This document shows, in pieces, positions 4,228 to 29,894 of a stretch of 64,000 nucleotides of DNA. Where the stretch lies: assembly GCF_964194025.1 (NCBI RefSeq), contig NC_134473.1:72230001-72294000 (forward strand), in the 5' to 3' direction. The position numbers and the translations under genes were made by a program. Every line of letters begins with the position of its first letter. Positions within the stretch are counted from its first letter, which is position 1. Below the pieces are notes generated by a model. That model did no database searches. It was not told where the DNA came from and was given only the letters and a program-made list of their open reading frames with translations. The stretch comes from Convolutriloba macropyga (Eukaryota).

Positions 4228-5414
4228 GTTAGTCAAACTCACGAGGTAAAAACTTGACTCATTGGTTGAGCTCAGAATCCATCCCAGGTTTAGGCATCAA
4301 CTTATGAAAAAACTCAAAAAATCTAGTGGAGAGGGCTCGCTTATTGACTAAAATTACACAGTCGAGCGTCCCGCTAAAGTCTTTTAAAGGGTCGAGTAAA
4401 AGTCTTTGCATGAGCTTTTGGGCCAAAGCATGCTATTTTCATGGATCGAGAAATACCATTTTAATTGTTGAACTAAGGACAATTCAACGGATGAGCAGGG
4501 TCTTTTCATGCGCAGAGCAAAAGACTTTTTTTTTGATAAGTCTTTCCTAGAAAAATTCGAAACTCTTTCAATATATGCTTCACATCAGTACATTAAGAAA
4601 AAGCAATTCATGTATCACGACTAACGAGCATTGTAACAGAGCACTCCAAATTGAAAGACAGTTGGAAAGTTACAAAATAAATTAAGATTTTTTGTGACTC
4701 TTTAGATAAAGCAGTTATCGCAGCTAGATTACATTGCCACATTACACCTGATTAAATGAATCTAGGCAGTTACATTACGATGCAGAGGTATACCCAAATC
4801 GTCACGGGCAGATATGCCCGATGCGTGTATCTCGTGTTCGTTTTTTACTATGTTAATACATTAAAAGGAAGGGAATATCGTATCCCGTGTTCGCAAAAGT
4901 GTCCTAACTTTAGCCGCGAAATAGAAGTACAAACTTAATAACCTATTTTTCGCGCGAGTTGTATCACGCATCTACTCCATTTATGTATCGATTTTTCGCA
5001 CGCAATGTAGCTGACCTTAATCACTCTAGCCATTATGAAAAAAACGGAATCTTTTAATTGTTTTCCCTTCAAAATTATGAGACGTCATTTTTTCAAACAA
5101 CCAGCTTTTTTGATTGACTACTTCTCTTCAGAAAAGCATTAGTTTAAAAGATCGTACTGAAGTACAGCGTGAGTTTAAATTAATTTTGTGTCAAGCTTAA
5201 GTGCATTATGGTTCTTAACTGCTTCATTAAAAAAATACAAGAGATTTTTGATTCATGATTTTTGATTCATCATCTTGGATTTAGATATTTTGCTCTGACA
5301 AACGCTTAATGAAAACTAGTCGACATTGTTTGGCATGTCTATAACAGCTCTCTCGTAACGGGTTCGCATCACTCCTCACACTTTGAGATCCAATACATTT
5401 CATCTGGCTTTTTC

Positions 5415-8400
5415 TATTTGGTTAGGCGAACTAGTTCGATCTGCGATCTTTTATGCACGTCAGTTCCTTGGCTAGGGTACCAAGCAAAATAAACCCTATC
5501 TAAACCAACGATGAACGAACAAGGGGTGCGTCCTGATTTTTTAGGGTCGTCGTGCAAGATAAACGCTTGAAAATCTGATTATGAAAACTCAAAAGTCTAA
5601 ACGCTAACTCTCGAAATTCTTGAATTATTAGCGGTGCTTACTTGAAATGACGTTCGTTTTAGTTTAAAAAATCGAGACAATCTATAACTAAAATTGAGAC
5701 AATTTTTGGAAGTGAAAACTGAAAAGCTTTTACACTATTCTTTTTTTAGTGGTAGATCGCGTGACTTTGTTTAGCGCAGAGGGTAAAACTGGTGGTGGTT
5801 TTTAGCGATTTAATTTGTTGACTCTATGTTCTGATCAGTAAAAGACTTCTGGTACAACAAATGTTTTCACGCTACTTTTCCTGGAAATGGTTGTTTTTTT
5901 TTTCAAAACAGTCGGGAGAAAAAACAATTCCATGTAAAGTATCTAATTTTTTATTTTTAAAATATGATCACTGGGTGGTATTGTGCTTGTTGTAAACTAT
6001 CAATATAGTGGAAACAAAAGGCATTTTTGTGTGGCGGCTGAAAGAAATTGCGTTCCCAATATCCACTAAGTCTCCCCTGAGTCTAGCTCTATTGAACATT
6101 AATCATAACGATTACCCTCAGTGGAACTATTGTTATTTAAATTGTTTAAAGCAATAACTTCCTTAATTTAAAAAGTTTTATCAGATTTAATGCTTTCAGT
6201 GTCTCTCTAAGTGGGAGAAAACGGGAACTTTGTTCATACCTCTTGCTCTAGGAGTTCTGGGTGGCTTCTCTTCACCTAAAAATTGTCTGAAAAGATTGTC
6301 CAAACTATCAGATATTCGTAGTTTCTATTCTGAGGGAATACTGGTGGCTTACGGAAATATTGTCTCAGTAGTGACCTATAATTGCTATCAGAGGATCAGC
6401 ATCTATGCTTTTGGTGAAGTCGAGTCTATCCCTTTTTGTTGAAGTCGAGATGTGTATCCATGAACTTGACTTATTGACAAGTAAACTCCCTTGTGATGAA
6501 AGCGCAATTGTTTCTGTTTACTCAATTGCTGCTTGATCAGAAAAAAATACTGAATTTATCATTATTTTCTCACAAAGCCGTTGAATTGACATTGAGGTGG
6601 ATGAACTCTGAATTGCTTCATTGTCGATTCTACAGTTTTGTTATTGCTGATGTCTTAAAAAATGAATTGAAACTTCCAACCAGTGTGCTAATGAAGACAG
6701 TAATGTGCATATAGGTGCCACCGCTCCAATGAGTCGCGAGTTGGCACCTATATACACATTACGTAATTTCCCTTTTGTTTTATCCAATATATTTCCCTTT
6801 ATAGTGAGACCGTGTAACTTGCACGTAAAACCAACTTGCGAAAATAACTTGAATAAAAAACCAGCTTAACTCTTTTATAAGTTTTAATTTGTTCGCTATT
6901 ATTTATTTAAAAAACTAATTAACTATAAAATCTAAACTCACCATTACAACCTTTAATACCTCTATCATCAAATGGATCAATAGCTATCTTGTATTGTTCT
7001 TTTGTTTCAAATGATGTTTCTTGCTATCAATAGTGTAATTAGTTACATATTTACTATTTGGTTAGGCGAACTAGTTCGATCTGCGATCTTTTATGCACAT
7101 CAGTTCCTTGGCTAGGGTACCAGGCAAAATAAACCCTATCTAAACCAACGGTGATTGACCAAGGGGTGCGTCCTGATATTTTAGGGTCGTCGTGCAAGAT
7201 GAACGCTTGAAGATCTGATTATGAAAACTCGAAAGTCTAAACGCTACCTCTCGAAATTCTGAATTATTAGCGGTGCTTACTTGAAATGACGTTCGTTTTA
7301 GTTGAAGAAATCGAGATAATCCATAACTAAAATTAAGACAATTTTTGGAAGTGAAAACTGAAAAGCTTTTACGCTTATACTTTTTTTAGTCGTAGATCGC
7401 GTGACTTTGTTTAGCGCAGAGGGTAAAACTGGTGGTGTTTTTTAGCGATTTATTTTGTTGACTCTATGTTCTGATCAGTAAAAGACTTCTGGTATAAAAA
7501 TGTTTTCACGCTACTTTTCCAGGAAATGGTTGTTTTTTTTTCAAAACACTCGGGAGAAAAATAAATTCCATGTAATATATCTAATTTTTTATTTTGAAAA
7601 TGTGATCACTGGGTGGCATTGTGCTTGTTGTAAACTATCAATATAGTGGAAACAAAAGGCATTTTTGTGTGCCGGCTGAATTGCGTTCCCAATTTCCAAT
7701 AATTCTCCCCTGAGTCTAGCTCTATTGAACATTAATCATAACGATTACCCTCAGTGGCATTATTGTTATTTAAATTGTTGACAGCAATGACTTCGTTATT
7801 TTAAAAAGTTTTATCAGATTTAATGCTTTCAAAGTCTTTCGAAGTGGAGAAAACGCGATCTTTGCTCATACCTCTTCCTCCAGCAGTTCTGGGTGGCTTC
7901 TCTTCACCTAAAAATTGTCTGAAAAGATTGTCCAAACTATCAGATATTCGTAGTTTCCATTCTTAGGTACTACTGGTGGCTTCAGGAAATATTGTCTCAG
8001 TAGTGACCTACAAATGCTATCAGAAGATCAGCTTCTATGCTTTTGGCGAAGTCGAGTCTATCCCTTTTTGTTGAAGTCGAGATGTGTATCCCTAAACTTG
8101 ACCTATTGACAAGTAAACTCCCTTGCGATGAAAGTGCAATTGTTTCTGCTTACTCCATTGCTGCTTGATCAGAAAGAAATGCTGACGTTATCATTATTCT
8201 CTCACAAAGCCGTTGAATTGCATTGAGGCGGTGAACTCTGAATTGCTTGTTTGTCGGTTCTACAGTTTTGTTATTGCTGATGTCTTAAAAAATGAATTAA
8301 AACTTCCAACCAGTTTGCTAATGAAGACAGTAATGTGCATATAGGTGCCTCTGCTCCATTGAGTCGCGAGTTGGCACCTATATACACATTACTTTATTTC

Positions 8401-8830
8401 CCTTTTGTTTTATCCACTATATTGCCCCTTCATATTCCCTCAAAATCTATCAATTCCTGTCTCATTTAGTGCAGTCTAATAGTATCGAGTTAAGCTGGTA
8501 ATTAACCGTTATCAGACGGATAGTTCGAATTCTATCCCAATTGTCTTCAGTGGACGTATCCCGGATACTAGTGTAACTAGTGAGACCGTGTAAGAAGCAC
8601 GTAAAACCAACTTGCGAAGATAACTTGAATAAAAAACCAGCTTAACTCTTTTATAAGTTTTAATTTGTTTGCTATTATTTATTTAAAAAACTAATTAACT
8701 ATAGAATCTAAACTCACCATTACAAACTTTATTACCTCTATCATCAAATGGATCAAAAGCTATCTTGTATTGTTCTTTTGTTTCTAATGATGTTTCTTAC
8801 TATTAATAGTGCAATTAGTTACATGTTTAC
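5415..8830. repeat. Tandem duplication of ~1.3 kb host intron DNA plus the element's left terminus and PolB 3' end (copy 1 ~5415-7058, copy 2 ~7053-8830)
   Basis: Collinear near-identical text from ctatttggttaggcgaactag (5415 and 7054) onward. Copy 1 lacks the ~150 bp segment 8430-8578. Confidence 0.92.
8329..8393. other. Terminal stem-loop of the element (20-21 bp arms, 23 nt loop); further copies at 6699-6762 and 26070-26133
   Basis: agtaatgtgcatataggtgcc-N23-ggcacctatatacacattact, one mismatch between arms. Confidence 0.85.
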
Positions 8831-11800
8831 TTTTTGCATCATAAATAGCATTTTTATAGTCTTCAATAGTAATTTGGTTTTTAATAGTAGCTTTGGTTAT
8901 GCCTTTTGACTTTTTCTCTCCTTCTCTTTTAACTATAGTATAACAATATGCTTTTGATTTAAGGAAACGGGCTTCTATAATAGTATCATTATGTAGCTCA
9001 TCCTCCATCTTGCCTAACTCATTATTATGTAATATATCTTTTATCTTATTCACTTCAGTTTCCATATCACTATCTAAAGGAGCATTTATGTTTAAAAATA
9101 CGCTATCAGTATCTGTATAATGATAACTACAATCTAATTTTATCAAAATTATCGTATATAGCTTTATACAAAAATAGTTTAACTTTCTCCAATATAACAA
9201 AACCAACACAATTAAACGTATCAAACTTATTTTAGTTCTTGTTTTATGTACAGCCACTAGTTCATAATCAAACTTCACAGCCTTTTTAAAACTAATATTT
9301 TCTACTAACTTAACTTATCTATCCAAATCATTAACTAACTCTACATCCTGTCTAATATATACATTTTCTATTGTTATTCTATAGAAGGCATTATTCATTA
9401 ACTTAAAGAATACATCACCAAAATTATCCCCCTAGCTTTATCTTCTTCCCATTTCTGAGTATTAAACTCAATATAAGCTTTAACCGCTCACTCTTACTAT
9501 ACTCTATCTTTTGCTTAATTGTAACATCTTCCAACCTTAAACTTTTACTTAAATACCATTCCACCATCTCTCCATCAATTACATAAGGCTTCTTATCTGT
9601 TGAATTCAACATCAACTTCTCATTTTGTTTAAATCCTTTCTTTTTATTTTCATTTTGATTGTCTGTAAACTGATCAATGTTAGCCTTTGTCTTATCTGGA
9701 AAGAATGGATAATTCTTTGTTTTCTGTTTCATCTCATCGGTATACTTTACATCAATGGTGTAGATATTAACCTTTAGTAGAGCTAGAGCTAGTATATACT
9801 ACACTGTTACAAACAATTATCTCAGCAGTAGGTAAAGCTTGCACCATAGCAGAGGAATATAATGAGCTGAAGTCTAAGTATTTTAAATAATTCTCTTTCC
9901 CAGTATACTCAGGATCTATTTCTTTATTTTTATATTTCACATGACAATCACCTAATACTGAAGCTAACCGACCTCTAATACCATGTTGTATTGTATCATA
10001 AATATTAACTGTATTTTCTTCATAATGTTTATGTCTAACATTAGTATATTTCAATCAACATAACCAAGTTAATCCAGGAGTAGAACATGTATAACAAGGA
10101 TCTATTTCATAATATTCTAAACACTCAGCTATTAAACTTTCAAATACATCTACCGATAATAAAACATCAGTTTTTAGATATAACATCATATAATTTTTTA
10201 TTGTTTCACATCCAGACTCTTTCCAACAATCTAACGCTTGCTTATACTCTTCATTAGTAACAACACTTTGTTTCAAAATAGAATAGAATACCTCCTTACG
10301 TGGTAATGATGATTCATTAAGTTTATCTGCACTAACTAACCATTCATATGGGAATATACCTTTACGTCTATCTAACTTAAATTTGTTTAATGTTACACAC
10401 TCTTTATGACTCAATGTTTTACTTATAGCATCAAAGCTAAGTTGATGGAAGATCCTAAACGCATCTTATGCTTTAGCATAACCCATATCAATACAAATGT
10501 AAATCTCATCAGTTTTTGTTAATACTTTAAGTCTAATCTTCTCTGCTAGTTTAGTTATAAATAGGTGATTATCATAATTAGTAGAATTAAATGCATATAT
10601 TGGTACAAAAGCGTTCTTATCTTGGAATTTATACTCATTGAGAGCATATCCTCTAAATTTACCATTTAGGTGATCATGATTTCTAGCAATGTCTTCACCC
10701 ATATACTCGTTACAATAATCACACTCAATACTAGGGTGAATAATACTATCTTCTTTTAAGGGAAAATTTATACTAAAAATCTCTTTAAACAATTTATTAT
10801 AATAACTCATACTACTTATAAACCAATCAACTATGCCATCTCCACAATAACTTTCATACTTATCCTCTAATATATCAGGATAATCAATTTTTATATATAA
10901 CTCACAAGCAATAGGAATATGTTTTCTGTTTTTATTATACATTCAAATTCATAATACGTAGCAAATGGTACGCCATTTTTAAAATGGAACTTATCAAACT
11001 TTAGATAATCATCACGATGGAATGTTCATCTTCCTGTATGGTTCTGTGTATCACACAATTCAAAATGTTTATTTTATGCTTGTTCAGTCAGAAATGATAC
11101 ACAACATTTTCGACATGGATAACATTTATGTTCAGATGAATTTCTTAATGAGAATGATACATCCTTACCTAGCAAATAATGATTATCCCAGTATAAAATA
11201 TTACATCCTTTTGGATCATTATGATTAATTAAAACAGGATTAATAGTTTTTTTTTATTTAGATTAATTACATTAAATAATACTTTATCTTTGTTGAACTC
11301 TTGTATTTTCTGTAAAGCTTTATATCCATAAGGAGGTGGAAGCCTCGGTAATTTTATCTCATTAATATACTCTGGTATTTTTATAATTTCTAACTCTATT
11401 GGGATGGTATTTAGCAGGATGTAGATAAGCAAGTAAACACCACAATAAACATTTATTATCATATTTATGTATATTAATTATATATTTAGACGTGAAGGGC
11501 AATTCATTAGTACAACCACCAGTAGGATAAAACCTGTGTTTATACATAGTTCTTTTAACAAATCTATTCATGCTCCAATCAGATTGTTTCATCTCATGTT
11601 CTTGTATTATAGTCTCATGTTCACAATTGAACATATCCAAGTCATAGGGAACATTATATTGTCTAGTCATTAGTCTAAATGTGAATTCATTTTCTTCTAA
11701 CTTATCATTTGAAGGTTTTGTATACCTTAATACATCAAAGGTGTTAAATTTTTTATGGGGATTCATGTTATACATTGTCTCGAATACTTTCAAGAATTTG

Positions 11801-12681
11801 GGATCTCCATAATTACTACATGTTATCATTATTTGATTATTTTTCATAACACAATCTAATCCTCACTCATTAACTTTCTCTCTCCACTTACCATCAACAA
11901 GTCTTGTCTGTCTAACATTTTCTTTATGATCATCTTAATCTTTGTGTTTATTTTTATTATTATATTTAGTTTTATATATATCGCAAGAACCTGTATTTGA
12001 TGTATGGGTCTTTGATAATGATTCTCTATCTTTAGATGAGTCTCTATCTTTAGATGATTCTCTATCCTTATCTTTTCTTTTAACGTTATCTGGATGCATC
12101 TTTGTTTTTAAATATTGATTCACATTATATTGACTTAGAGTAGTCTTACATGTTACACATTCAAACTTAATCCCATTCTTTATTATTTCTCCACTATTTA
12201 GTCTTACATTATTCCTATGTTTTAATGTTTCTATATGTTTATTATATTCAGTATTTTTATCTAGATACATATCACAACTATCAAAATACTTTATTCCCTA
12301 TAGTTCAGGATAATGTTTATTTTTTTGTTCTATATCTTCAATAGTTTCATTTCTATTATATAATCGCTCATTCGTTTTATGTTTAAATAATTGAATGTAT
12401 CTAGCGTAATTCTTTTGAGTTAACTCTTGATTACAATCTTCGCATCTAGTCTCATTAGTATTATTTTAGGTTTATTAAACATAGACAATATCATCAGATG
12501 AATCTGAATCTGAATCTTTAGATGATTCTCTATCTTTAGATGATTCTCTATCTTTGGATGATTCTCTATCGTTAGATGATTCTCGTTCTTTAGATGGATC
12601 CAAATCTGACTCTAAATCTATAGATGATTCTCTATCTTTAGATGATTCTCGATCTTGCTTCAGTCTTTCGCAATGACTCAT
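8695..12681 (-). pseudogene. polB: Protein-primed-type family B DNA polymerase (Polinton/Maverick-like), unit A, essentially full length (~1330 codons) but broken by stops and frameshifts
   Basis: In order: C2H2-like fingers, NKCLLWCLLAYLHP, CxxC...DH..GKFRG (endonuclease VII-like), YDNHLFI (ExoII), RKGIFPYEW, YLKTDVLL (ExoIII), YLDFSSLY (motif A), FFKLMNNAFY (B), YTDTDS (C), KSKAY, KSKGI. Confidence 0.93.
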
Positions 12682-12994
12682 GCATATCCTCTTCTCGTTG
12701 TTTTAATTTTGCAGTCTGTTTATCATACGACTCCTTTATTTGACAAACATCTGTTCGTTTGTTTTCTTCTTGTAGTTTGTTTTTCTTTAACAACATTTGG
12801 GTTACTATGCTAGTAGAACTAGATTGGGCTTGTCCACTTCCAAATTGAGCTCGCTCACTTTGACATTGGACTTGTCAACTTCCAGATTGGACTTCAATTC
12901 CAGTTTGAATGTTATCGTTGTAATCTTGTGCACTTATTTTTATACGACAACTTTTGAAATAACATTATTTATGTAATTTTTCACATTAAAAATT

Positions 12995-13276
12995 ATTAGT
13001 ATTAAGTGCGATAAATGTAAAGATAAGGCTTGGTGTTGGAGTTGTGATATATGTCAAAGTGAGCCTTTCATATGTTTTGTATGTAAGGAAACTAGAACAT
13101 ATAGAGAGAGGCATGATCATATGTATATACATTATAATGGTCCTAATCAAAATTTAGTATGTAGAAAGTGTCAAGTAAATAAACATATCCCTCACTATAG
13201 ATTTAAACATTTCACTTGTAGGCTATGCTTGTATCTCAATAGATATAGATTTGGTCGTACTAAAAAAGATTTATAG
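12995..13276 (+). pseudogene. Small Cys/His-rich protein, unit A (frame open, start codon lost)
   Basis: Translates ISIKCDKCKDKAWCWSCDIC..., homologous to ORF 21252-21536. Confidence 0.75.
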
Positions 13277-13294
13277 AACATGTAAATAAACATG

Positions 13295-14029
13295 GAGAGA
13301 ACACACCATCTGTATAGGTTAACTTAAATAGTTCACGACAATTCTTTGAAAGTGTACAAGAGAAGTTTATAAATGATTCTCATTTATATAGATTGAAATA
13401 TTATAAATATGGTATAATAAATTATGGTACTATTGGTGACTATTATATTGTATGAGATAAAGATAAAAATTGTGTATATGATTCTAGAAATGGCGATCTT
13501 GAATTTGAGAAGTATATTGATTATACAGAGTTTAAAGAAAAAGAATTTAATATATTAAGTAGTTATTTAATAGATAGAATGGTAGAACCAACACATATGA
13601 AACCAAATGATTTAATGTTCTACTTTGAAGAATATTTAAATTTTAAAGAAACAAACAAACCATTCAATTTTTATAAAACTTATACGAAAGTAAAAAGTAT
13701 ATGTAATAAGATCCATAGTGGATATATTGCTATATTTGGGATAATTACTATATTTGGATTTGCATATAGTTACAATCAAAAATATGGTGACAATAATAAA
13801 AATACTAATAATGATAAAAATTAATGGTATAGATATAAGGAACATAGATAAGGCCAAAATTAATTTCAGAATTGGTAAGAAGGTATCAAAAGGTTCTGGT
13901 GAAATTAATAATAACAATAAAACAATAGATATAAAACGTATTTTAGCCATTAGTCTTATATCTATTTATGCAAACCATAATCTTAATAAATCTACAATTA
14001 AAACTGACGTTAATATAAAGAGAATGTAA
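13295..14029 (+). pseudogene. ATPase gene 3' half, unit A; Walker A/B region deleted
   Basis: Sequence jumps from just after the Cys-rich ORF to the RENTP region; continues into MVEPTHMKPN...; frameshift near 13820. Confidence 0.8.
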
Positions 14030-14618
14030 TATTGAAATTGATGATAGGGGTGATCATTCAGAACATAAATAAATAACACATTGTAATAAGTTACATAATA
14101 TTTTAAATGTAAGATGTATGAAAAGTATGCAAAGACAATATAGTGGTCATCATTTTAGAGATGAATGCAAAGATAATCGTACAGGTTCTATAACATCAGC
14201 ACATAGTTATATTGATTATACTGATATTAATAATAGTGATAGTGATAGTGATTGTAATGATAATATTGATATCAATAAGGTTTTTAATGATATGAAAGAT
14301 AGTATTGTAGAGAATTTAGAATATTACATTGGAAATGAATTTAAAAAAGGTATAAATGAGATAGAAACAGAAATTACAAATGATTTATAAACAGGGGTAA
14401 TATTAAAAGGAAAAGTAAAGAAATTAAAACAACTAGAATTTGTTTTCTAAGCAAAATTGAAACGAATAGAGATTGTTTTTTATAAAACTGGTGGTTTATG
14501 TAAAGAATGTTGTTCAGAAAATGTTCGATGTCCAAAATGTAATATTATGTTAATTAGATCTTCTCTCAGTAAACATATAAAAAGGCCACATAATAGCCAA
14601 AATAGTAATTCTACTTAA
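14005..14618 (+). pseudogene. Zn-finger protein, unit A
   Basis: Homologous to 19569-20084. C-terminal GLCKECC..CPKC..RSSLSKH motifs in shifted frames. Confidence 0.75.
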
Positions 14619-14619
14619 A

Positions 14620-15055
14620 ATTTGGCATTAGATTAAAAACTACAAAAACTACACAGATTATATACAATCCGAGGATAATTCCGCATTATGCGCATAAATT
14701 TTCCGCATATTGCGCACTAAAACTACAAATCACATAGAATAACAGTAGATTACATAGGAAAGCATTAGATTACATAGAATAACATTAAATTACATTGAAT
14801 AACACGGATTAATATATAGCCCAAGATAATTCCGCACGCGTTCAGAATTATCTTGGGCTATATATTAATCCGTGGTATTCTATGTAATCTAATGTTATTC
14901 TATGTATTCTAATGTTATTCTATGTAACCTACTGTTATTCTATGTAATTTGTAATTTTAATGCGCAATATGCGGAAAATTTATGCGCATAATGCGGAATT
15001 ATCCTCGGACTTGTATATAAATTGTGTAATTTTTGTAATTTTTAATATAATGCCA
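14620..15055. repeat. Palindromic junction 1 (head-to-head join of units A and B), axis ~14839
   Basis: ...tatagcccaagataattc cgcacgcgttca gaattatcttgggctata...; arms carry 20-bp tandem repeats (agattacatagaataacatt-like). Confidence 0.93.
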
Positions 15056-15059
15056 AATT

Positions 15060-15662
15060 TTATCTAGAATTATTATTTTGGCTATTATGTGACATTTTGT
15101 ATGGTTACTAAGAGAAGATCTATTTAAGCTAAAATTACATGTTGGACATGGAACTATTCCTGAACAACGTTCCTTACATAAACCCCAGTTGTATAAAAAC
15201 AATCTCTAATCTTTTCAATTTTGCATAAACAGCAAGTTCTATTTGTTTTAGTTTCCTTACTTTCCTTCTTTATATTACCCCCTGTTTTTAAATCATTTAT
15301 AATTTCTGTTTCTATCTCATTTATAATTTCTGTTTTCATTCATTTATAATCTCTCTTTGTAAATTATCTTTCAATTCATTAAAAACCTTATTGATATCAA
15401 TATTATCATTACAATCCTTATCACTATCACTATTATTAATATCAGTATAATCAATATAACTATGTACTGATGTTATAGTACCTGTACGATTATCTTTGCA
15501 TTCATCTCTAAAATGATAACCACTATATTGTCTTTGCATACAATTCATACATCTTACAATTAAAATATTATGTAACTTATTACAATGTATTATTTATTTA
15601 TTTTCTGAATGATCACCCCTATCATCAATTTCAATATTAAATTCACTACATATTAACGTCAG
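15060..15662 (-). pseudogene. Zn-finger protein, unit B
   Basis: ORF fragments 15336-15548, 15154-15339, 14999-15202 (CCLCKIEK..., CKERC..CPTC..RSSLSNH). Confidence 0.75.
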
Positions 15663-16343
15663 TTTTAGATGTAGATTTAATAAGATTATGGTTTGCATAA
15701 ATAGATATAAGACTAATGGCTAAAATACGTTTTATATCGATTGTTTGATTGTTATTATTAAATTCACCAGAACCTTTTGTTACCTTCTTACCAATTCTGC
15801 ATTTAATCTTGGCCTTATCTATGTTCCTTATGTCTATACCATTAATTTTATCATTATTAGTATTGCTGTTATTGTCACCATGTTTTTGATAGTAACTATA
15901 TGCAAATCCAAATATAGTAATTTTACCAAATATAGCAATATATCCACTATGGATCACATTACATACACTTTTTACTTTCGTATAAGTTTTATAAAAATTG
16001 AATGGTTTGTTTGTTTCTTTAAAATTTAAATATTCTTCAAAGTAGAACATTAACTCTTTTGGTTTAATATGTGTTGGTTCTACCATTCTATCTATTAAAT
16101 AACTACTTAGTAAAATAAATTCTTTTTCTTTAAACTCTGTATAATCAATATACTTCTCAAATTCAAGATCGCCATTTCTAGAATCATATACAACCTTTTT
16201 ATCTTTATCTAAAACAATATAACAGTCACCAATAGTACTAAAATTTAATATACCATATTTATAATGTTTAAATCTATATAGATTAGAATCAATTTTAAAC
16301 TTCTCTTGTCATCTTTCAAAGAATTGTCGTGAACTATTTAAAG

Positions 16344-16398
<55 letters not shown>

Positions 16399-16860
16399 GC
16401 TTTTGTGTTCTCTCTTGCTTTAGTATTTAAATCTGTTGCAATATGACCCACACATATTATATTAATATTGTGTTGTCTACCTTTAGAGTATACTGAATCT
16501 AGAGCTGGTAATCTAATGTTTTCGCCCAGATCATCAAATATAATAGCGCTATTAGCAAAGTTATCTATATTATCTAAAAATTTTAAATCATCAATGCCGT
16601 ATGCGTTATAACCCTTCCACTCACTGGCATCAATACAGAATACCTTAACACTATCATACAAACCACAATAATCTTTTATAATTGTTGTTTTGCCTGAATT
16701 AGATGGACCAAAAAAAATAAAGTTATGTTTCTACATTTCAAGTGGTTCTTATAGAACATTCCTATATCCCACAAATCTCACCCAAAAAGCAGAATATTTT
16801 TCATAATCCCAATAAGCAATAATAATAATTTATAATAACATATTAAATAACGGGAAAACT
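15646..16860 (-). pseudogene. A32/FtsK-HerA-type ATPase with C-terminal hydrophobic segments, unit B
   Basis: GPSNSGKT at ~16690-16710, IIFDD, SKGRQHN. Disrupted by a (TA)n tract. Frame reads through ...GDCYIVLDKD...DRMVEPTH... into ORF 15646-16086. Confidence 0.85.
16345..16398. repeat. (TA)n microsatellite inside the unit B ATPase gene
   Basis: Direct read; gives the IYIYIY artefact in the ORF track. Confidence 0.97.
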
Positions 16861-16912
16861 AAATAAATTTTTATTAGGACTAAACTTCAATATTATATTT
16901 CTTTACATGTTC

Positions 16913-17195
16913 TATAAATCGTTTTTAGTACGACCAGGTCTATATCTATTGAGATACCAGCATAACCTACAAGTGAAATGTTTAAATCTATAGTGAGGGA
17001 TATGTTTATTTACTTGACACTTTCTACATACTAAATTTTGATTAGGACCATTATAATGTATATACATATGATCATGCCTCTCTCTATATGTTCTAGTTTC
17101 CTTACATACAAAACATATGAAAGGCTCACTTTGACATATATCACAACTCCAACACCAAGCCTTATCTTTACATTTATCGCACTTAATACTAATAA
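16913..17195 (-). pseudogene. Small Cys/His-rich protein, unit B
   Basis: Nearly identical inverted copy of 12995-13276. Confidence 0.75.
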
Positions 17196-17506
17196 TTTTT
17201 AATGTGAAAAATTACATAATTAATGTTATTTCAAAAGTTGTCGTATAAAAATAAGTGCACAAGATTACAACGATAACATTCAAACTGGAATTGAAGTCCA
17301 ATCTGGAAGTTGACAAGTCCAATGTCAAAGTGAGCGAGCTCAATTTGGAAGTGGACAAGCCCAATCTAGTTCTACTAGCATAGTAACCCAAATGTTGTTA
17401 AATAAAAACAAACTACAAGAAGAAAACAAACGAACAGATGTTTGTCAAATAAAGGAGTCGTATGATAAACAGACTGCAAAATTAAAACAACGAGAAGAGG
17501 ATATGC

Positions 17507-18996
17507 ATGAGTCATTGCGAAAGACTGAAGCAAGATCGAGAATCATCTAAAGATAGAGAATCATCTATAGATTTAGAGTCAGATTTGGATCCATCTAAAG
17601 AACGAGAATCATCTAACGATAGAGAATCATCCAAAGATAGAGAATCATCTAAAGATAGAGAATCATCTAAAGATTCAGATTCAGATTCATCTGATGATAT
17701 TGTCTATGTTTAATAAGCCTAAAATAATACTAATGAGACTAGATGCGAAGATTGTAATCAAGAGTTAACTCAAAAGAATTACGCTAGATACATTCAATTA
17801 TTTAAACATAAAACGAATGAGCGATTATATAATAGAAATGAAACTATTGAAGATATAGAACAAAAAAATAAACATTATCCTGAACTATAGGGAATAAAGT
17901 ATTTTGATAGTTGTGATATGTATCTAGATAAAAATACTGAATATAATAAACATATAGAAACATTAAAACATAGGAATAATTTAAGATTAAATAGTGGAGA
18001 AATAATAAAGAATGGGAGCAAGTTTGAATGTGTAACATGTGAGACTACTCTAAGTCAATATAATTTGAATCAATATTTAAAAACAAAGATGCATCCAGAT
18101 AACGTTAAAAGTAAAGATAAGGATAGAGAATCATCTAAAGAAAGAGAATCATCTAAAGATAGAGAATCATTATCAAAGACCCAAACATCAAGTACAGGTT
18201 CTTGCGATATATTTAATACTAAAAATAATAATAAAAATAAACACAATGATTCAGATGATCATAAAGAAAATGTTAAACAGAAAAAACTTGTTAATGGTAA
18301 GTGGAGAGAGAAAGTTAATGAGTTAGGATTAAATCATAATGTGAAGTATAATCAAATAATGATAGAAGTAATAATTATGAAGATCCCAAAATCTTGAAAG
18401 TATTAGAGACAATGTATAACATAAATCCCCATATAAAGTTTAAGAGCTTTGATGTAGTAAGGTATACAAAACCTACAGATGATAAGTTAGAAGAAAATGA
18501 ATTCACATTTAGACTAATGATTAGAAAATTTCATGGTCCCTATGACTTGGATATATTGAAAAGTGAACTCGAGACTGGAATGCAAGAACAAGCGTGAAAC
18601 AATCTCGTTGGAGCATGCAAAGATTTGTTAAAAGAACTATGTATATACAGAGGTTTTATCCTACTGGTGTTTGTACTACTGAGTTAGCATTCACGTCTAG
18701 ATATATTTTTAATACACATAATAATAAAAATAAATGTTTATTGTGGTGTTAACCTGCTTATCTACATCCTGCTAAAGCCCATCCCAAAAGAGTTAGAAAT
18801 TATAAAAATACCAGAGTATATTAATGAGATAATATTACCGAGGCTTCCACCTCCTTATGGATATAAAGCTTTACAGAAAATACAAGAGTTCAACAAATAT
18901 AAAGTTTTATTTAATGTGTTCAATCTAAATAAAAATAAAACTATTAATCCTGTATTAATCAATCATAATGATCCGGACAGATGTATTATATTATAC
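17507..18996 (+). pseudogene. polB: PolB N-terminal third, unit B, truncated and fused to a terminal-repeat arm
   Basis: ORF 17507-17713 is identical to 12475-12681. Homology to PolB stops after INHNDPDRCIILY at ~18996. Confidence 0.88.
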
Positions 18997-18999
18997 CTA

Positions 19000-19402
19000 T
19001 ATAGATTAAAAATTACAAAAAATATACAGATTATATACAAGTCCAAGGATAATTCCGCATTATGCGCATAAATTTTCCGCATATTGCGCATTAAAATTAC
19101 AAATTATATAAAATAACAGTAGATTACATAGAATAGCATTAGATTACATAGAATAACATTAGATTACATTATATAACACGGATTAATATATAGCCCAAGA
19201 TAATTCCGCACGCAGGCGGAATTATCTTGGGCTATATACTAATCCGTGGTATTCTATGCAATCTAATGCTATTCTATGTATTCTAATGTTATTCTATGTA
19301 ATTTGTAATTTTAATGCCCAATATGCGGAAAATTTATGCGCATAATGCGGAATTATCCTCGGACTATATATAATCTATGTAACTTTTGTAATTTATAATC
19401 TA
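19000..19402. repeat. Palindromic junction 2 (~200 bp arms), axis ~19212
   Basis: ...gcccaagataattccgc acgcag gcggaattatcttgggc...; same 20-bp subrepeats as junction 1. Confidence 0.93.
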
Positions 19403-19412
19403 ATGCCAAATT

Positions 19413-20048
19413 TTAACTAGAATTATTATACTGGCTATTATGTGGCCTTTTTATATGTTTACTAAGAGAAAATCTTTTTAAAATAATATTAAATGTTGGA
19501 CATGGAACTTTTTCTGGACAACAATTTTACATAAAACCCCAGTTGTATCAAAACAATCTCTAATCTTTTCAATTTTTGCATGAACAACAATTTCTATTAA
19601 CTTTGGTTTCCTTGTTTTCCTTCTTTATATTACCCCCTGTTTTTAAATCATTTATAAATTTTGTTTCTATCTCTTTTATATCTTCTTTTTGTATTTCATT
19701 TATAATCTCTATTCGTAAATCATTTCTAATGTAATACTTTAAATTCTCTACAATACTATCTTTTATATCATTAAAAACATTATTGATATCAATATTATCA
19801 TTACAAACACTATCACTATTATTAATATCAGTAAAATCAATACAACTATGTACTGATGTCATAGAACCTGTACGATAATATTTGCATTCATTTCTAAAAC
19901 TAGAACCACTATATTGTCTTTGCATACATTTCATACCTCTTAAAAATAAATTGTTATGTAACTTAATATAATGTATCATTAAATCAAGTTCTGGATAATC
20001 ACCACTATCAACAATTTCATTATAACATTCTCTACATATTAACGTCAT
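19413..20048 (-). pseudogene. Zn-finger protein, unit C (likely start MTLICREC)
   Basis: N-terminal CxxC...H...H, acidic/helical middle and C-terminal CxxC clusters after a frameshift at ~19575. Confidence 0.78.
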
Positions 20049-21202
20049 TTTTAGTTGTAGAATTATTAAGATTATGGGTTGCATAAATAGATATAAGACT
20101 AAAGTCTAATATACATATTATATCTAATGTTTCATTGTTATTATTAAATACACCATAAGCTATTGTTCCCTTCTTACCAATTCTTAGTTTAATCTTGGCC
20201 TTATCTATGTTCCCTATATCTATACCATTTATTTTATCATTATTAGTATTTTTATTATTGTCACCATTTTTGATAGTAACTATATGCAAATCCAAATATA
20301 GTAATTATCCCAAATATAGCAATATATCCACTATGGATCTTATTACATATACTTTTTACTTTCGTATAAGATTTATAAAAATTGAATGGTTTGTTTGTTT
20401 CTTTAACGTTTAAATATTCTTCAAAATAGAACACTAACTCATTTCGTTTAATATGTGTCTGTTCTGCCATTCCATCTTTTAAATAACTACTTAGTATATT
20501 AAGTTCTTTTTCTTTAAAATCTGTTTGATCAACATACCACTCAATATCAAGATCGCCATTTCTAGAAACATTTACAACATTTTTATCTTTATCTCATACA
20601 ATATAATAGTCACCAATAGTACTGTAATTTATTATACCATATTTATAATATTTAAATCTATATAGATTAGAATCAATTTTAAACTTCTCTTGTACTCTTT
20701 CAAAGATATGCCGTGAACTTTTTAATGTAACATATAAAGCTGGTGTGTTCTCTCTTGTTTTTGTATATAAATCTGTTACAATATGACCCACACATATTAT
20801 ATTCATATTGTGATGTCTACATTTAGAGTGTAATGAATCCATATCTGGTAATCTAATGTTTTCTCCTATATCATCAAAAATAATAAGACTATTAGCAAAG
20901 TTATCTATATTATCTAATAATTTTAAATCATCAATGCCGTATGCGTTATAACCCTTCCACTCACTGGCATCAATACAGAATACATTAACGCTGTCATAAA
21001 AACCACAATATTCTTTTATAAATAATGTTTTGCCTGAATTAGATGGCCCATAAATAATAAAGTTATGTTTCTTCATTTCAAGTGGTTCTTGTAGAATATT
21101 CCTATATCCCAAAAATCTCGTCCTAAAATCAGAATATTTATCATAATTCCAATAAGCAATTATAATAATTAATAATAACATATGAAATAATGGGAACACC
21201 AA
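20032..21202 (-). pseudogene. A32/FtsK-HerA-type (virus packaging-like) ATPase with hydrophobic N- and C-terminal segments, unit C (~390 codons reconstructed)
   Basis: Walker A IIYGPSNSGKT, Walker B LIIFDD, arginine-finger-like SKCRHHN, ICVGH. TGA at 20594, then homologous continuation in ORFs 20261-20470 and 20032-20295. Confidence 0.88.
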
Positions 21203-21251
21203 ATAAAATTTTATTAGGACTAAACTTCAATATTATATTTCTTTACATGTT

Positions 21252-21536
21252 CTATAAATCGTTTTTAGTACATCCAAATCTATATCTATTGTGATACAAG
21301 CATAACCTACAAGTGAAATGTTTAAATCCATAGTGAGGGATATGTTTTTTTACTTGACATTTTTTACATAGTAAATTTTGATTAGGATCATTAAAATGTA
21401 TATCCATGTGATCATGTCTCTCTCTATATGTTATAGTTTCCTTACATACAAAACATAAGAAAGGCTCAATTTGACACATATCACAACTCCAACACCAAGT
21501 CCTATCTTTACATTTATCGCTTTTAGTACTAATCAT
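21252..21536 (-). CDS. Small Cys/His-rich putative Zn-binding protein (94 aa), intact in unit C
   Basis: ATG-initiated ORF with repeated CxxC and His residues; frame conserved in all three units. Confidence 0.75.
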   Translation of the reverse strand: MISTKSDKCKDRTWCWSCDMCQIEPFLCFVCKETITYRERHDHMDIHFNDPNQNLLCKKCQVKKHIPHYGFKHFTCRLCLYHNRYRFGCTKNDL

Positions 21537-21539
21537 TTC

Positions 21540-21720
21540 TAATTATAAAAAATTACATAAATAATATTATCTCAAATTTTTTCGTATAAAAATAAGTGCA
21601 CGAGATTCCAACGATAACATTCAAACTGGAAATGAAGTCCAATCTGGAAGTTGACAAGTCCATTGTCAAAGTGAGCGAGCTCAATTTGGAAGTGGACAAG
21701 CCCAATCTAGTTCTACTAAC
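21540..21720. promoter_or_regulatory. Putative divergent promoter between the Cys/ATPase/ZnF block and PolB (copies at ~12810-12990 and ~17200-17380)
   Basis: Non-coding gap between divergent genes with gtataaaaa (~21584) and repeated caat(c/t)tggaagt(t/g)gacaag(t/c)cca motifs. Confidence 0.55.
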
Positions 21721-21911
21721 ATGGCTACCCAAAAGTTTTTAAATAAAAACTAACTACAAGAAGAAAACAAACAAATAGACGGAGAAAGACAAAAAGGAGG
21801 AAGCAGAAAAAGATTTAGAATCAATCAGAAGGTTTAATCAAATAAATGAAGAAATAAAGGAGTCGTATGATAAACAGACTGCAAAATTAAAACAACGAGA
21901 AGAGGATATGC

Positions 21912-24900
21912 ATGAGTCATTGCGAAAGACTGAAGCAAGATCGAGAATCATCTAAAGATAGAGAATCATCCATAGATTTAGATACAGATTCGGATCCACA
22001 TAAAGAACGAGAATCGTCTAAAGATAGAAAATCATCCAAAGATAGAGAATCATCGAAACATAGAAAATCATCTAAAGATTCAGATTCAGAATCATCTGAT
22101 GATATTGTCTATGCTAAAAAGCCTAACAAAAATACTAATAAGAATAGATGCGAAGATTGAAATCGAGAGTTAACTCAAAAGAATTATGCTAGATACATTC
22201 AATCACTTAAACATAAAACGAATGAGCGATTATATAACAGAAATGAAATTATTGAGAGTGCTTATAATGTTGGAGTAAAAGTTACTATTGAAGATATAGA
22301 ACAAAAAAAAGATAAACGGCAAAAGAAAAAGAGGGAATAAAATATTGTGATAGTTGTGATATGTATCTAGATTATAATACTGAACACTATAAACATATAG
22401 AAACATTAAACCATAGGAAAAATGCAAGACTAAATATTGGGGAATTAATAAAGAGTGGGAGTAAGTTTGAATGTGTAACAGGTAAGACTACTCTAAGTCA
22501 ATATAGTGTGGAGCAACGTTTAAAAACAAAGATGCATCTAGATAATTTTAAAGGTAAAGCTGAGGATAAAAAATCATCTAAAGATAGAGAACCATCTAAA
22601 GATAGAGAATCATTATCAAAGACCCAAACATCAAGTACAGGTTCTAGCGATATATGTCATACTAAATATAATAATAAAAATAAACACAATGATTCAGATG
22701 ATCATAAAGAAAATGTTAAACAAAAAATTTGTTGATGGTAAGTGGAGAGAGAAAGTTAATGAGTGAGGATTAGATTGTAATATGAAATATAATCAAATAA
22801 TGATAACATGTAGTAATTATGGAGATCCCAAATTCTTAAAAGTATTAGAGACAACGTAAAACATAAGTCCCCGTATAAAATTTAAAAGCTTTGAAGTAGT
22901 AAGGTATACAAAACCTACAGATGATAAGTTAGAAGAAAATGAATTATTATTTAGACTCAAGACTAGACAATATAATGGTCCCTATGACTTGGATATGTTG
23001 AAAAGTGAACTTGAGACTAGAATGCAAGAACAAGCGTGAAACAATCTCGTTTGAGCATGCAAAGATTTGTTAAGAGAACTATGTAAATACACAGGTTTTA
23101 TCCTACTGGTGGTTGTACTACTGAGTTACCATTCACGTCTAGATTTATTTTTAATATACATAATAATGAAAATAATTGTTTTTTGTGGTGTTTAATTGCT
23201 TATCTACATCCTGCTAAAGCCCATACCAAAAGAATTAGTAATTATAATTAACCAGAGTGTATTAATGAGATAAAATTACCAAGGCTTCCACCTCCTTATG
23301 GATATAAAGATTTACAGAAAATACAAGTGTTCAACTAATATAAAGTTTTATTCAATGTGTTTAATCTAAATAAAAATAAGACTATTAATCCTAATCCTGT
23401 ATTAATCAATCATAATGATCCAAAAATATGAAATATATTATACTCGATAATCATTATTTGCTATGTAATGATGTATCATTCTTATTAAGAAAATCATCTA
23501 AATAAAAATGTTATCCATGTCTAAAATGTTGTGTATCATTTCTAACTGAACATGCATTACGTAAACATTTAGAACTGTGTGATACACAGAACCTTATAGG
23601 AAGCAGAACATTTTATCGTGATGATTATCTAAAGTTTGATAAGTTCCACAATAAAAACAGAGTACCATTTGCTATGTATTTTGATTTTGAATGTCTAAAA
23701 AAAACAGAAAACACATTCCTACTGCTTGTGGGTTTTATATAAAAAGTGATTATCCTGATATATTAGATTAAAAGTATGAAAGTTATTGTGGAGATGGCAT
23801 AGTTGATTGGTTTATAAGTAGAATGAGTTATTATAATAATTTGTTTAAAGAGATTTTTAGCATAAATATTCCATTAAAAGAAGATCGTAGTACTCCACTT
23901 ACTATTGGGTGTTTTTATTGTAACGAGTATATGGGTGAAGACATTGTTAGAGATCATGTGAATTGTAAATTTAGAGGATATGCTAACAATAAGTGTAACC
24001 TCCAGGCTAAGAACAGTTTTGTACCAATATATACTTTTAATTCTACAAATTAAGATCATCACCTATTTAAAACTGAACTAGCAAAGAAGATTAGACTTAA
24101 AGTATTAACAAAAACTGATAAGAATTATATTTGTTTTGATATGGGTTATGCTAAAGCATTAGGTATGCTTAGGTTCTTCCATCCACTTAGCTTAGATGCT
24201 ATAAGTAAAACATTGAGTGATAAAGAGTGTGTAACGAAAAACAAATTTAAGTTAGATAGACGTAAAGGTATATTCCCATATGAATGATTTGATAGTATAG
24301 ACAAACCTAATGAAAAATCATTACCACCCAAGGAGGTTTTCTATTCTAAGTTGAAACAAAGTGGTATTACTAATGAAGAGTATAGGCAAGCGTTAGATTA
24401 TTGGAAAGAAGCTGGATGTGAAACAATAAAAGATTCTATGATGTTATATCTAAAAACTGATGTATTATTATCGGTAGATGTATTTGAAAGGTTAAGAGGT
24501 AAGTGTTTAGAATATTATGAAATAGATCCTTGTTATACATATTCTAATCCTGGATTAACTTGGTTACGTGGATTGAAATATACTAATGTTAGACTTAAAT
24601 ATTTTTAAAAAATACAGTTAATATTTATGATACAGTACAACCTGGTACTAGAGGTGGTTTAACTTCAGTGTTAGGCGATTGTCATGTGAAATGTTAAAAT
24701 AAAGAAGTAGATCCAGAGTATACTGGGAGATAGAATCATTTAAAACACTTAGAGTTCAACTCATTATATTCCTCTGTTATGGTTCAAGCTTTACCTACTG
24801 GTGACATAAGTGTTTGTAACGGTTTAGTATATACTGGCTCTAGCTCTACTAAATGTTATATCTACACCATTGATGTAAGGTATACCAATAAGATGAAACA

Positions 24901-25497
24901 AAAAACAAAGAAGTATCCATTCTTTCCACAAAAGACAAAGGCTAATATTGATCAGTCTACAGATTATCAAAATGAAAATAACAAGAAAGGATACAAACCA
25001 AGCGAGAAGTTGATATTGAAGTTAACAGATAAGAAGGATTATGTAATTGAAAGAGAGATGATGGATTGGTATTTTAATAAAGGTTTGAGGTTGGAAGATG
25101 TTACAAATAAGCAAGAGTTAGAGTATATTAAGAGTGAGTGGTTAAAGACTGATACTGAGTTTAATATTCAGAAAAGGAAAGAAGCTAAAGCTAAGGGTGA
25201 TAAATTTGGTGATTTATTCTTTAAGTTAATGAATAACGCCTACTATGGAAAAACAATAAAAATGTATATAATAGACAAGATAGAGTTATTTAATGATATA
25301 GGTAGATATATTAAATTAGTAGAAAGTATTAGTTTTAAATATGCTGTAGATTTTGATGATGAACTAGTGGCTGTACATAAAACAAGAGGTAATGTTAAGT
25401 TAGATAAGTTTAATTATATTGGTTTTTTTATATTAGAGAGAGCTATACTTTTTATGTATAAAATTCTATATACAATTACTTTCAGAAAAACTTAGAT
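21912..25497 (+). pseudogene. polB: Protein-primed-type PolB, unit C, truncated just before motif C
   Basis: Collinear with unit A PolB: CFYC..VRDH..FRGY, YLKTDVLLSVDVFE, FFKLMNNAYYGKT. Replaced after ~25497 by an inverted copy of the left end. Confidence 0.92.
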
Positions 25498-25499
25498 TA

Positions 25500-26108
25500 G
25501 TTTTAGTTATAACTTATCTCGAGTTCTTAAACTAAAACGAACGTCATTTCAAGTAAGCACCGCTAATAATTCAGAATTTCGAGAGGTAGCGTTTAGACTT
25601 ACGGTTTTCATAATCAGATTTTCAAGCGTTCATCTTGCACGACGACCCTAAAATATCAGGACGCACCCCTTGGTCAATCACCGTTGGTTTAGATAGGGTT
25701 TATTTTGCTTAATACCCTAGCCAAGGAACTGATGTGCATAAAAGATCGCAGATCGAACTAGTTCGCCTAACCAAATAGTAAATATGTAACTAATTACACT
25801 ATTGATAGCAAGAAACATCATTTGAAACAAAAGAACAATACAAGATAGCTATTGATCCATTTGATGATAGAGGTATTAAAGGTTGTAATGGTGAGTTTAG
25901 ATTTTATAGTTAATTAGTTTTTTAAATAAATAATAGCGAACAAATTAAAACTTATAAAAGAGTTAAGCTGGTTTTTTATTCAAGTTATTTTCGCAAGTTG
26001 GTTTTACGTGCAAGTTACACGGTCTCACTATAAAGGGAAATATATTGGATAAAACAAAAGGGAAATTACGTAATGTGTATATAGGTGCCAACTCGCGACT
26101 CATTGGAG
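25500..26108 (-). repeat. Inverted near-identical copy of ~6724-7333
   Basis: Contains the same PolB-3'/host duplication breakpoint (ccaaatagtaaatatgtaac) and the same ~150 bp deletion as at 6800. Confidence 0.92.
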
Positions 26109-26621
26109 TGCAGACACTTATATAAACATTACTGAAGATGTTATTTTTCAAAAGTTGACGACAATTATTGACAAAATAGTGTTATCAAAATAACGAAGCT
26201 TAAATGAAGCAGCAATTTTTGTCAATTTGAAATTAAATTATTTTAGACTTTCAAAAGTAAGAGGACAAAAACGAGGATAAAAAGTTACTATCACCGAAAG
26301 AATTTTGTCCAGAAAAATGAATCATAAAGATTTCCTGTAGGAAAAGGTCTTCTAAAATTCATTTCTTAGACGATTCCTTAAAAAAGACGATTCCTTAAAA
26401 TTAACCGTCAAAAACTATATACTTTTTAAGTTTCTTTAGCGCGTTTTAACCTGTTTTTACAACTATTTCGGTAATGTTTCACAAATTTTCAAAAAAAAGG
26501 TCACGCGTGAAAAGGTTCTTCATAAATTTTCGTTCCAGTTAGGATTTTACAAAAACGTATTTGAGATGCCACGATATTTTGTGCAGATTTTCAGCAACTT
26601 TTACACAGAAGTGTGTTGCAG

Positions 26622-26838
26622 ATTTTGAAGTGGAGAAGGGACTTGGTTACCTGGACATAGGCGGAGGACTGTCTTTCCAGATCTACCTGTACGACCCGGC
26701 GACCACAGTGCTGACTACCCTGGACAAGTCATACTCCTTTGACATAGGACCAGGGAGGAGTTACAAAGTGGGATTGTCTACCAGATCCTTCCAGGATGCC
26801 AGTGGATTCAGTGGCTGCATACAGGAGGGAAAAGAAGG
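26622..26838 (+). CDS. DEG/ENaC exon
   Basis: ttgcag|AT completes G+AT=Asp, giving LQLMFDFEVEKGLGYLDIGGGLSFQIYLYDP...IGPGRSYKVGLS. Donor GG|gttagt, phase 2. An alternative in-phase acceptor exists at 26595. Confidence 0.8.
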
Positions 26839-27513
26839 GTTAGTTGGGCAAAAACTGCCTTCTATAATTTATAAGGTCTACGAAAACAAACATGCAGCCA
26901 ATGAGTTGTATTTAAATCATAGCCTGCTTAACTGATTAAAATACCAAAAAACGCATCATACAACCATAGCAACAATGGTGTACCCTAATCGAGGCCTGTA
27001 TACCCGTATTCCACCGCAATTAGGCGAGAATAAGGGAGTAAAGCATTTCCACTCTTAAATAGAAGGGAAAAGAGTGTAACTTCGAGGAAGTTACACTTTT
27101 TTACACTCTTTACACTCTTTACTCCACTCTTATTACACTCTTAAAAATTCCTTATGATTTTACTCTTCAGTCCAATTTTTAACAGGGAAAAAGAGGTGAA
27201 GAATTTTATTTTCACTACTCAAAGGCGTTCCAAAACCAGAGTAATGTTTTTACTGCTAGGTTTAGTGGTACCTTGAAAAACAATGCTTCCTCTTTTTTTC
27301 ATTTTGAATCACTTTCATCCAGATAAACTGAATGAGACACTTGAGAACGGGCCATCGGCCCAATAGTGCTCTCCCACAGTCAAATATGTGATTGTATTTG
27401 TACAAGTAATTGTGAAGCTACTTAATGACTGATGGAAACAATTTGCTATTATTATTATTAAGAGTGTATTTTATTTTAAAATTACACTCTTAGAAATACA
27501 CTACAATTACGCT

Positions 27514-29511: not shown

Positions 29512-29894
29512 AATTGTGCATGATGAAATGTACTCCCCAATGCAGCTTCGCAAAGTATGACATGACCACGACCTCAACCAAGTTCCCCACTCGCGACTTT
29601 GCCAAATACCAGAAGTCAATCTTCGGACCGGACTCAAACATGACACATGACTACATGAGAAGAAACCTAGCCGAGCTGAGCGTAAGCATGGCAAGTCTGA
29701 CTGTGAGTCACACGACAACCCTCCCCAAATACGAGATATTCTCAACAGGAAGTGCAATGGGGGGTCTGTTTGGCCTCTTGCTCGGAGGAAGCATGATGAC
29801 CTTATACGAGGTCTCAGAGCTTATAGTCAGTGGTGTCTATCACTGTGGAAAGACCTCAGGATTTTTAACAAGGAAGCGAGTTTCACCAACTTAG
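29512..29894 (+). CDS. DEG/ENaC last exon with TM2 and selectivity filter
   Basis: tttag|AA. Encodes CTPQC...KFP...NLAEL...MGGLFGLLLGGSMMTLYE (GG..GL..GxS...E motif). Stop at 29894; AATAAA near 30021. Confidence 0.92.

Follow-up and report, generated by a model that had tools for sequence, protein, structure and literature searches.

What kind of element sits in a chromosome as a mirror image of itself, with a polymerase gene pointing outward at either end and no integrase of its own? The question is raised by a stretch of 64,000 nucleotides from Convolutriloba macropyga (RefSeq assembly GCF_964194025.1, contig NC_134473.1, positions 72,230,001 to 72,294,000 of the forward strand; the whole stretch is referred to here as the window), in which a preliminary description had pointed out a Polinton-like insert arranged as an inverted dimer. 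We put the probability at roughly 70% that the window holds a long-dead, palindromic and non-autonomous derivative of the Polinton/Maverick elements, its symmetry due to copy-back synthesis and its integration supplied by a helper. The whole palindrome is the integrating unit, and the two arms of a copy were identical on arrival.

Structure and gene content of the insert

Self-comparison of the window reveals three copies (A, B and C) of one unit, contained in a single insertion (6699-26133) with polymerase genes pointing outward at both ends. The insert begins with AGTAATG at 6699 and finishes with CATTACT at 26133, exactly as first described; the limits originally given (6693-26139) delineate the same insertion but count in the flanking 6-bp target-site duplication (TSD), the element proper being 6699-26133. 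The two TSD copies, GAAGAC and GAAGAT, match at five of six bases. Composition also sets the insert apart: it is AT-rich, with a guanine-cytosine (GC) content of 25-29% versus 35-40% in the flanks. Arms A and B abut head to head at 14838/14839 with zero spacer, and a second palindrome centre has its axis at 19212/19213. The structural features are as follows.

6693-6698, no strand: left TSD, GAAGAC; a second copy at 8323-8328 was produced by the left tandem duplication
6699-7060, plus: outermost terminus, a duplicated solo fragment with the 65-bp stem-loop, non-coding DNA and the final polymerase codons; 96.7% identity to the right terminus
8329-14838, minus: arm A, which begins with a terminal stem-loop of its own (8329-8393) and reaches the palindrome centre; minus-strand polymerase
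14629-15049, no strand: palindrome centre 1, axis 14838/14839; either side has 20-bp tandem repeats and a conserved core motif
14839-18996, plus: arm B, incomplete, starting at the centre and breaking off inside the polymerase; first copy of the 4.37-kb duplication
19002-19212, minus: stub of a left arm (210 bp), which with arm C makes palindrome centre 2
19213-26133, plus: arm C, bounded by the centre and by the right terminus with its stem-loop (26069-26133); plus-strand polymerase
26134-26139, no strand: right TSD, GAAGAT; five of six bases equal the left copy

The two unlike ends ascribed to the unit, a 65-bp stem-loop beside the polymerase and a repeat-rich inner end fused to its own inverse, are both present. 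Every terminus forms the 65-bp stem-loop (folding z -3.7 to -8.8). In a comparison of 11 termini, drawn from seven loci, pairing in the 21-bp stem reaches 95.7%, with four compensatory pairs. The inner end, built of 20-bp tandem repeats, is invariably fused to its inverse, both in the window and at five other loci.

Each arm holds four genes: a polymerase of ~1400 codons, a Cys-rich gene of ~120-140, an A32-like ATPase of ~300 and a zinc-finger gene of ~150. This content bears out the ~7-kb unit of the preliminary description, with the polymerase facing outward and the Cys-rich, ATPase and zinc-finger genes facing inward. Against PF03175, a relative's polymerase piece scores 53.5 bits (cut-off 25.8) and the window fragment 24.2 bits; against PF04665, P0154 scores 36.1 bits (cut-off 22.8) and the window ATPase open reading frame (ORF) 29.6 bits. 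The N-terminal third of the polymerase contains zinc fingers and an 18-bp coding repeat. This tandem repeat, of ~8 units and rich in Ser, Lys, Asp, Arg and Glu, is found in all three polymerase copies (12514-12656, 17532-17674 and 21937-22079). The genes of the three arms are listed below; the break counts are minimum values, obtained against natural ORF pieces of relatives that were each searched apart, and the comparison probes were natural contiguous copies.

8701-12937, minus: arm A protein-primed polymerase B; broken, at least 5 frame changes and at least 16 stops
12950-13267, plus: arm A Cys-rich gene; broken, at least 1 stop
13288-13647, plus: arm A A32-like ATPase; broken, one ~540-bp deletion and at least 2 stops
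13968-14384, plus: arm A zinc-finger gene; broken, at least 2 stops
15324-15698, minus: arm B zinc-finger gene; broken, at least 2 stops
16018-16874, minus: arm B ATPase; broken, at least 1 frame change and at least 4 stops
16921-17238, minus: arm B Cys-rich gene; broken, at least 1 stop
17251-18996, plus: arm B polymerase, truncated to its N-terminal part; at least 3 frame changes and at least 3 stops
19659-20084, minus: arm C zinc-finger gene; open
20402-21214, minus: arm C A32-like ATPase; broken, at least 1 stop
21264-21542, minus: arm C Cys-rich gene; matched part without a stop
21592-25907, plus: arm C polymerase; broken by no fewer than 9 frame changes and 14 stops, and by one host-derived replacement of coding DNA

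The window copy is dead: all its genes are broken except two small ones, the zinc-finger and Cys-rich genes of arm C. Alternative genetic codes leave the frames closed, and the genes are thus genuinely broken. Structural approaches were of little help, since predictions were poor (predicted local-distance difference test (pLDDT) 34 for the zinc-finger ORF and 45 for the ATPase, the latter with a 16-sequence alignment); in a sequence search of solved structures, the polymerase pieces had no match and the ATPase gave only P-loop noise.

An rve integrase has zero Pfam matches in any arm ORF, an rve-like gene being confined to the canonical relatives, and L009, a complete related copy, is fully filled by the four arm genes. 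The double-jelly-roll (DJR) capsid (PF21738) is likewise without a match in the arms, which leave no space for capsid or penton genes, and the search for a telomere resolvase, protelomerase or junction-resolving nuclease gene gave only a sub-threshold Endonuclease_7-like segment inside the polymerase (21.8 bits, cut-off 23.6). The adenain-like cysteine protease has no Pfam match in the arms, nor in canonical copies, which makes this last test one of low power. The absence of integrase and capsid genes, already claimed for the window, extends to all complete or near-complete copies examined.

Related dimers and the origin of the palindrome

Is the mirror symmetry peculiar to this locus? All related loci considered here (L-numbers) come from one ENA assembly, ERZ25071359, and are integrated copies. 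The window polymerase fragment has 1842 homologues, the closest of which (58-72% identity) are short fragments from this assembly, and a search with the ATPase returned 76 clusters from the same assembly with ~230 member sequences, often two per contig; the family comprises well over a hundred copies. Comparison with other loci, the check proposed in the preliminary description, yielded five further head-to-head palindromes of the same kind (L002, L003, L006, L007 and L009). Their axes all fall in a single homologous core, where 0-4 bases are left unpaired; variants of the core that are specific to a lineage appear on both arms in mirror image. In two test segments, each arm's nearest relative is its partner at its own locus, and A, B and C of the window group together.

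That a dimer inserts as a single piece, as had been supposed, is evident from the perfect 6-bp TSDs around the complete 12.9-kb dimer L009 (AGTCTT; arms 96-97% alike) and around a lopsided 9.4-kb dimer, L005 (ACCGGC). Two other loci are also asymmetrical: in L008 one arm is kept and the other is reduced to ~350 bp, and L012 (7.4 kb), the only all-element contig examined, is a lopsided inverted form with a different junction and not a monomer. The L005 dimer is adjoined by a BEL/Pao-type retrotransposon polyprotein (L005 1-1285).

Palindromes are a known failure mode of long-read libraries, and false inverted junctions could have been contributed by chimeric fold-back reads; one contig, L004, does terminate near the centre. 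However, arm-to-arm divergence is 3-16%, where such an artefact should leave identical arms, and at least six independent contigs, covered at 33-63x, show the structure. Misassembly, raised as a concern at the outset, is barely credible as an explanation.

Could the palindromes instead have been made in place, through errors of host replication or repair such as fold-back or template switching at the short inverted repeats that an ordinary inserted element carries? Host-side events of this general kind are on record here: the window contains two tandem duplications and a 640-bp end transfer, and the flanks of L006 (5331-5972 and 19659-20302), which has no TSD, form a 640-bp inverted repeat that is 93.6% alike, versus 84-87% for its arms. 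A mechanism is available in the origin-dependent inverted-repeat amplification model (PMC4689423). By contrast, TSDs surround entire dimers, and at no locus does a single arm run on past the centre into other element genes. Moreover, dimer lineages differ by up to ~30% in DNA yet share one homologous centre, which argues that the architecture is inherited and not accidental. An origin in place is very improbable.

With two ~7-kb arms joined head to head, both outer ends of the molecule are the same terminus. The palindrome may be created, and its symmetry kept, by copy-back synthesis in the course of protein-primed strand-displacement replication: a displaced palindrome strand would fold back, its duplex end would again act as an origin, and copying round the turn would restore the dimer. 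A different starting form has also to be weighed, namely a linear monomer with one protein-capped end and one closed hairpin end, in which copying through the hairpin yields a dimer that is occasionally captured by a helper integrase. Such a monomer would fit the turning of all symmetrical dimers at one homologous site with 0-4 unpaired axis bases, as well as the symmetry of the arms within each lineage. It could also draw on an Endonuclease_7-like (HNH) segment in the middle third of the polymerase (L005 6773-8047, minus strand) and on a full Endonuclease_7 gene in a canonical relative, nucleases of this type being known to cleave cruciforms. The segment, however, remains under the Pfam cut-off (21.8 bits versus 23.6) and is also present in the canonical lineage; no monomer was seen, the sole all-element contig examined (L012) being an inverted form; and a palindrome that propagates as a palindrome accounts for the same data. 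We consider the hairpin-ended monomer rather unlikely, while acknowledging that genomic copies cannot separate this route from propagation of the palindrome by copy-back. A bolder reading may be offered tentatively: in animal genomes, a lineage of Polinton derivatives would have an obligate palindrome as its heritable form, rebuilt in each cycle by copying past a defined turn-around site (or by way of a hairpin-ended monomer), and such an element, reduced to its own polymerase and ATPase, would depend as a satellite on canonical Polintons for integrase and capsid.

Canonical relatives that might act as helpers are present in the same assembly. L010 and L001 represent a 16.06-kb canonical element with a terminal inverted repeat (TIR) of ~350 bp and the TSD GGTGGA on both sides; two rve-like ORFs accompany fragments of a DJR capsid gene, and there is an A32-like signal, though a weak one. 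DNA identity with the window is ~80% for the terminus, the Cys-rich gene and the polymerase. The polymerase segment even nests among the dimer polymerases (88-90% to L008 and L003), which indicates that the polymerase module has been exchanged between dimer and canonical forms. Capsid-bearing elements are very abundant in ERZ25071359, with more than 521 DJR protein clusters. With canonical elements this abundant, and with one of them sharing the termini and polymerase module of the dimers, help in trans is plausible: canonical Polintons, with their rve-like integrase and identical termini, would supply integration, and their capsids would probably be borrowed too, with the ATPase of the dimer serving packaging. 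The earlier proposal of an integrase acting in trans is to this extent strengthened, as integrase-bearing relatives with matching termini do coexist with the dimers; that this integrase performs the insertion we infer. Within the L010/L001 element, a tandem duplication with a ~720-bp period (L010 12801-14486, equal to L001 3347-5075; 97%) doubles an rve-like ORF, and the left terminal stem-loop of L010 is without its outer half, the target-site hexamer being retained. A younger element with capsid and integrase (L011; capsid 51.3 bits against PF21738, cut-off 27) differs at the place of the L010 polymerase: an Endonuclease_7 gene of 274 residues is found there (9776-13704) together with a zinc-finger gene of C2H2 type, and no polymerase is present in the 15.5 kb of L011 examined.

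Several observations weigh against a helper-dependent palindrome. The window TSD has one mismatch. L006, with inverted flanks and without a TSD, demonstrates that host-side rearrangement also shapes loci. The inner module of the dimers (ATPase, zinc finger and centre) was not found in the canonical elements examined, and a canonical-type ATPase (496 residues, L011) is only 25% identical to that of the dimers; a packaging-type ATPase has no evident role in an element without capsid genes. Finally, among the copies examined none is intact and there is no free molecule, replication and dependence on a helper being what we infer from integrated DNA.

Rearrangements after insertion and surroundings of the locus

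How did a two-armed element come to have three arms in the window? After insertion, the copy underwent a 4.37-kb central duplication, a 1.64-kb left duplication, a later left-to-right transfer of 640 bp, arm-to-arm gene conversion and heavy decay. The first is a direct tandem duplication spanning the original centre (14629-18996 equals 19002-23443), through which a simple dimer of A and C, head to head, becomes A facing B plus a stub facing C, with no further events needed. Unit B is accordingly a duplication product and does not count as a third insertion. Arm B is evenly 88-93% identical to arm C, and its identity to arm A is patchy (88-99.6%, with ~1 kb at 99%); patchiness over an even baseline of 88-92% points to arm-to-arm gene conversion. 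An alternative source of the A-B-C order, two dimers side by side followed by a deletion, was rejected, as the TSD pairs the left end of A with the right end of C and as A, B and C cluster together. Hypermutation as the cause of the higher arm divergence was also discarded, the transition/transversion ratio being 0.6-1.0 everywhere.

The second event, a left tandem duplication of 1.64 kb in exactly two copies (5410-7050 and 7050-8836; 93.6% substitution identity), runs across the left junction between host and element. Arm A has its own terminus at 8329, and the terminus at 6699 is a duplicated solo copy, each being preceded by GAAGAC. Three further features belong to these rearrangements.

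5410-6692, no strand: host flank, copy 1 of the left duplication; followed by the TSD hexamer GAAGAC at 6693-6698
7050-8328, no strand: host flank, copy 2; now within the insert
25497-26133, plus: outer inverted repeat, right copy; partner 6699-7336, 96.4% identity; copies the junction created by the left duplication

The last 640 bp of arm C include 285 bp of host origin. The right end thus carries a junction that was made by the left duplication, from which it follows that the right end of C was overwritten from the left end afterwards. The ages agree: at 96.4%, the outer repeat is younger than both the tandem copies (93.6%) and the match between the own terminus of A and C (90.8%). At related loci, the polymerase tail continues directly into the terminal 370 bp without a host-derived block, and the duplicated host flank was not found in any of them. 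L006, with its 640-bp flanking repeat, is a second case, beside the window, of ~640 bp moving between dimer ends. The head-to-head anatomy first proposed for the window stands, with three later rearrangements added that had been missed (unit B, the doubled left end and the odd right end of C).

Arm A has a GC-richer insertion of ~146 bp in its non-coding terminal region, on the stretch that separates the polymerase stop from the stem-loop; neither of the two remaining window termini has it. A portion resembles a stem-loop of transfer RNA (tRNA) type, but it has no match in Rfam. The Rfam scan returned only the host tRNA and a sub-threshold microRNA match on the terminal stem-loop, and the 285-bp host-derived block received no name.

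Beyond the insert, the window from 49833 to its end at 64000 is taken up by a satellite array; its period is ~604 bp, its copies are 88-96% alike, and a related 458-bp sub-repeat lies at 50432-51815. The locus is probably situated in heterochromatin. A tRNA-Leu gene (anticodon TAA; 48256-48338, 60 bits) stands immediately upstream of the satellite. To the right of the insert, a 124-codon ORF without a Pfam match (26561-26935) coincides with a local GC peak of 47-50%, and an exon of an amiloride-sensitive sodium channel (PF00858) lies at 29514-29894, its best named relative being from the acoel Convolutriloba macropyga (55% identity). A host repeat of 110-180 bp, dispersed and found in either orientation with 70-87% identity, is present in the window (32066-39172 and 49226-49373) and again in L001 (15885-16072) and L003 (16096-16284), and is common to the window and to the flanks of related loci. 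The window contains a run of N at 35559-35758.

Comparison with known systems

With canonical Polinton/Maverick elements the dimers share a protein-primed polymerase B, an A32-like ATPase, TIRs, AG...CT ends and a 6-bp TSD. They differ in having neither integrase, capsid, penton nor protease, and in an inverted repeat that comprises the whole element, each gene being present twice. Polinton/Maverick replication is described by models and, to our knowledge, has never been observed. Mirror dimers with one conserved turn site, TSDs and symmetry within each lineage, forming a diversified family of many copies, amount to a natural record of a fold-back step; were the obligate-palindrome version true, it would be natural evidence on how protein-primed eukaryotic elements replicate. 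The relation to canonical elements would be that of a parasite to another parasite, in which the element keeps its own replication genes and borrows integration and, probably, capsids. The family sequences also provide a concrete set with which to seek free forms, expression and distribution, and carry a warning for annotation, as an inverted pair of polymerase genes need not mean two insertions.

When a hairpin end has been replicated, the result is a near-perfect palindrome in which a few axis bases stay unpaired, as in poxvirus concatemer junctions and the telomeres of N15 and Borrelia. The dimer centre is such a palindrome, with 0-4 unpaired bases; unlike these hairpin-telomere replicons, the dimers gave no match to a resolvase or protelomerase gene, and they are known here from assembled chromosomal copies.

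Adenovirus incomplete genomes are, beside those of adeno-associated virus (AAV), further examples of snap-back defective genomes. As in the AAV case (PMC8235507), one end is mirror-duplicated, what the opposite end encoded is lost, and a complete helper is presumed to be needed: the dimer arms keep the terminus, the Cys-rich gene and the polymerase, and are without the integrase and capsid side of the canonical element. Snap-back genomes, however, arise anew with variable junctions and are not inherited, whereas one junction is found here across six palindromes, other junctions occurring only in the lopsided variants L005 and L012.

Very long inverted arms, tandem repeats and an unstable structure are also typical of Foldback transposons (Galileo/FB; PMC3573991), but these are moved by a transposase and their arms are non-coding.

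In the literature searched there was no description of a palindromic, integrase-less Polinton. The nearest report is that of butterfly polintons, in which gene-bearing TIRs of ~2 kb, with capsid and protease genes, surround a unique core (bioRxiv 10.1101/2025.02.07.637071). These likewise place genes inside TIRs, with two copies per insertion; in the dimers, by contrast, the repeats meet mid-element and hold the polymerase. The impression of an unrecognised family given in the preliminary description is thus justified as regards architecture, but not as regards ancestry, since the polymerase module is common with that of ordinary Polintons. We class the element as a derivative within Polinton/Maverick that lacks the integrase and capsid features of that group and would work like a snap-back satellite of its canonical relatives.

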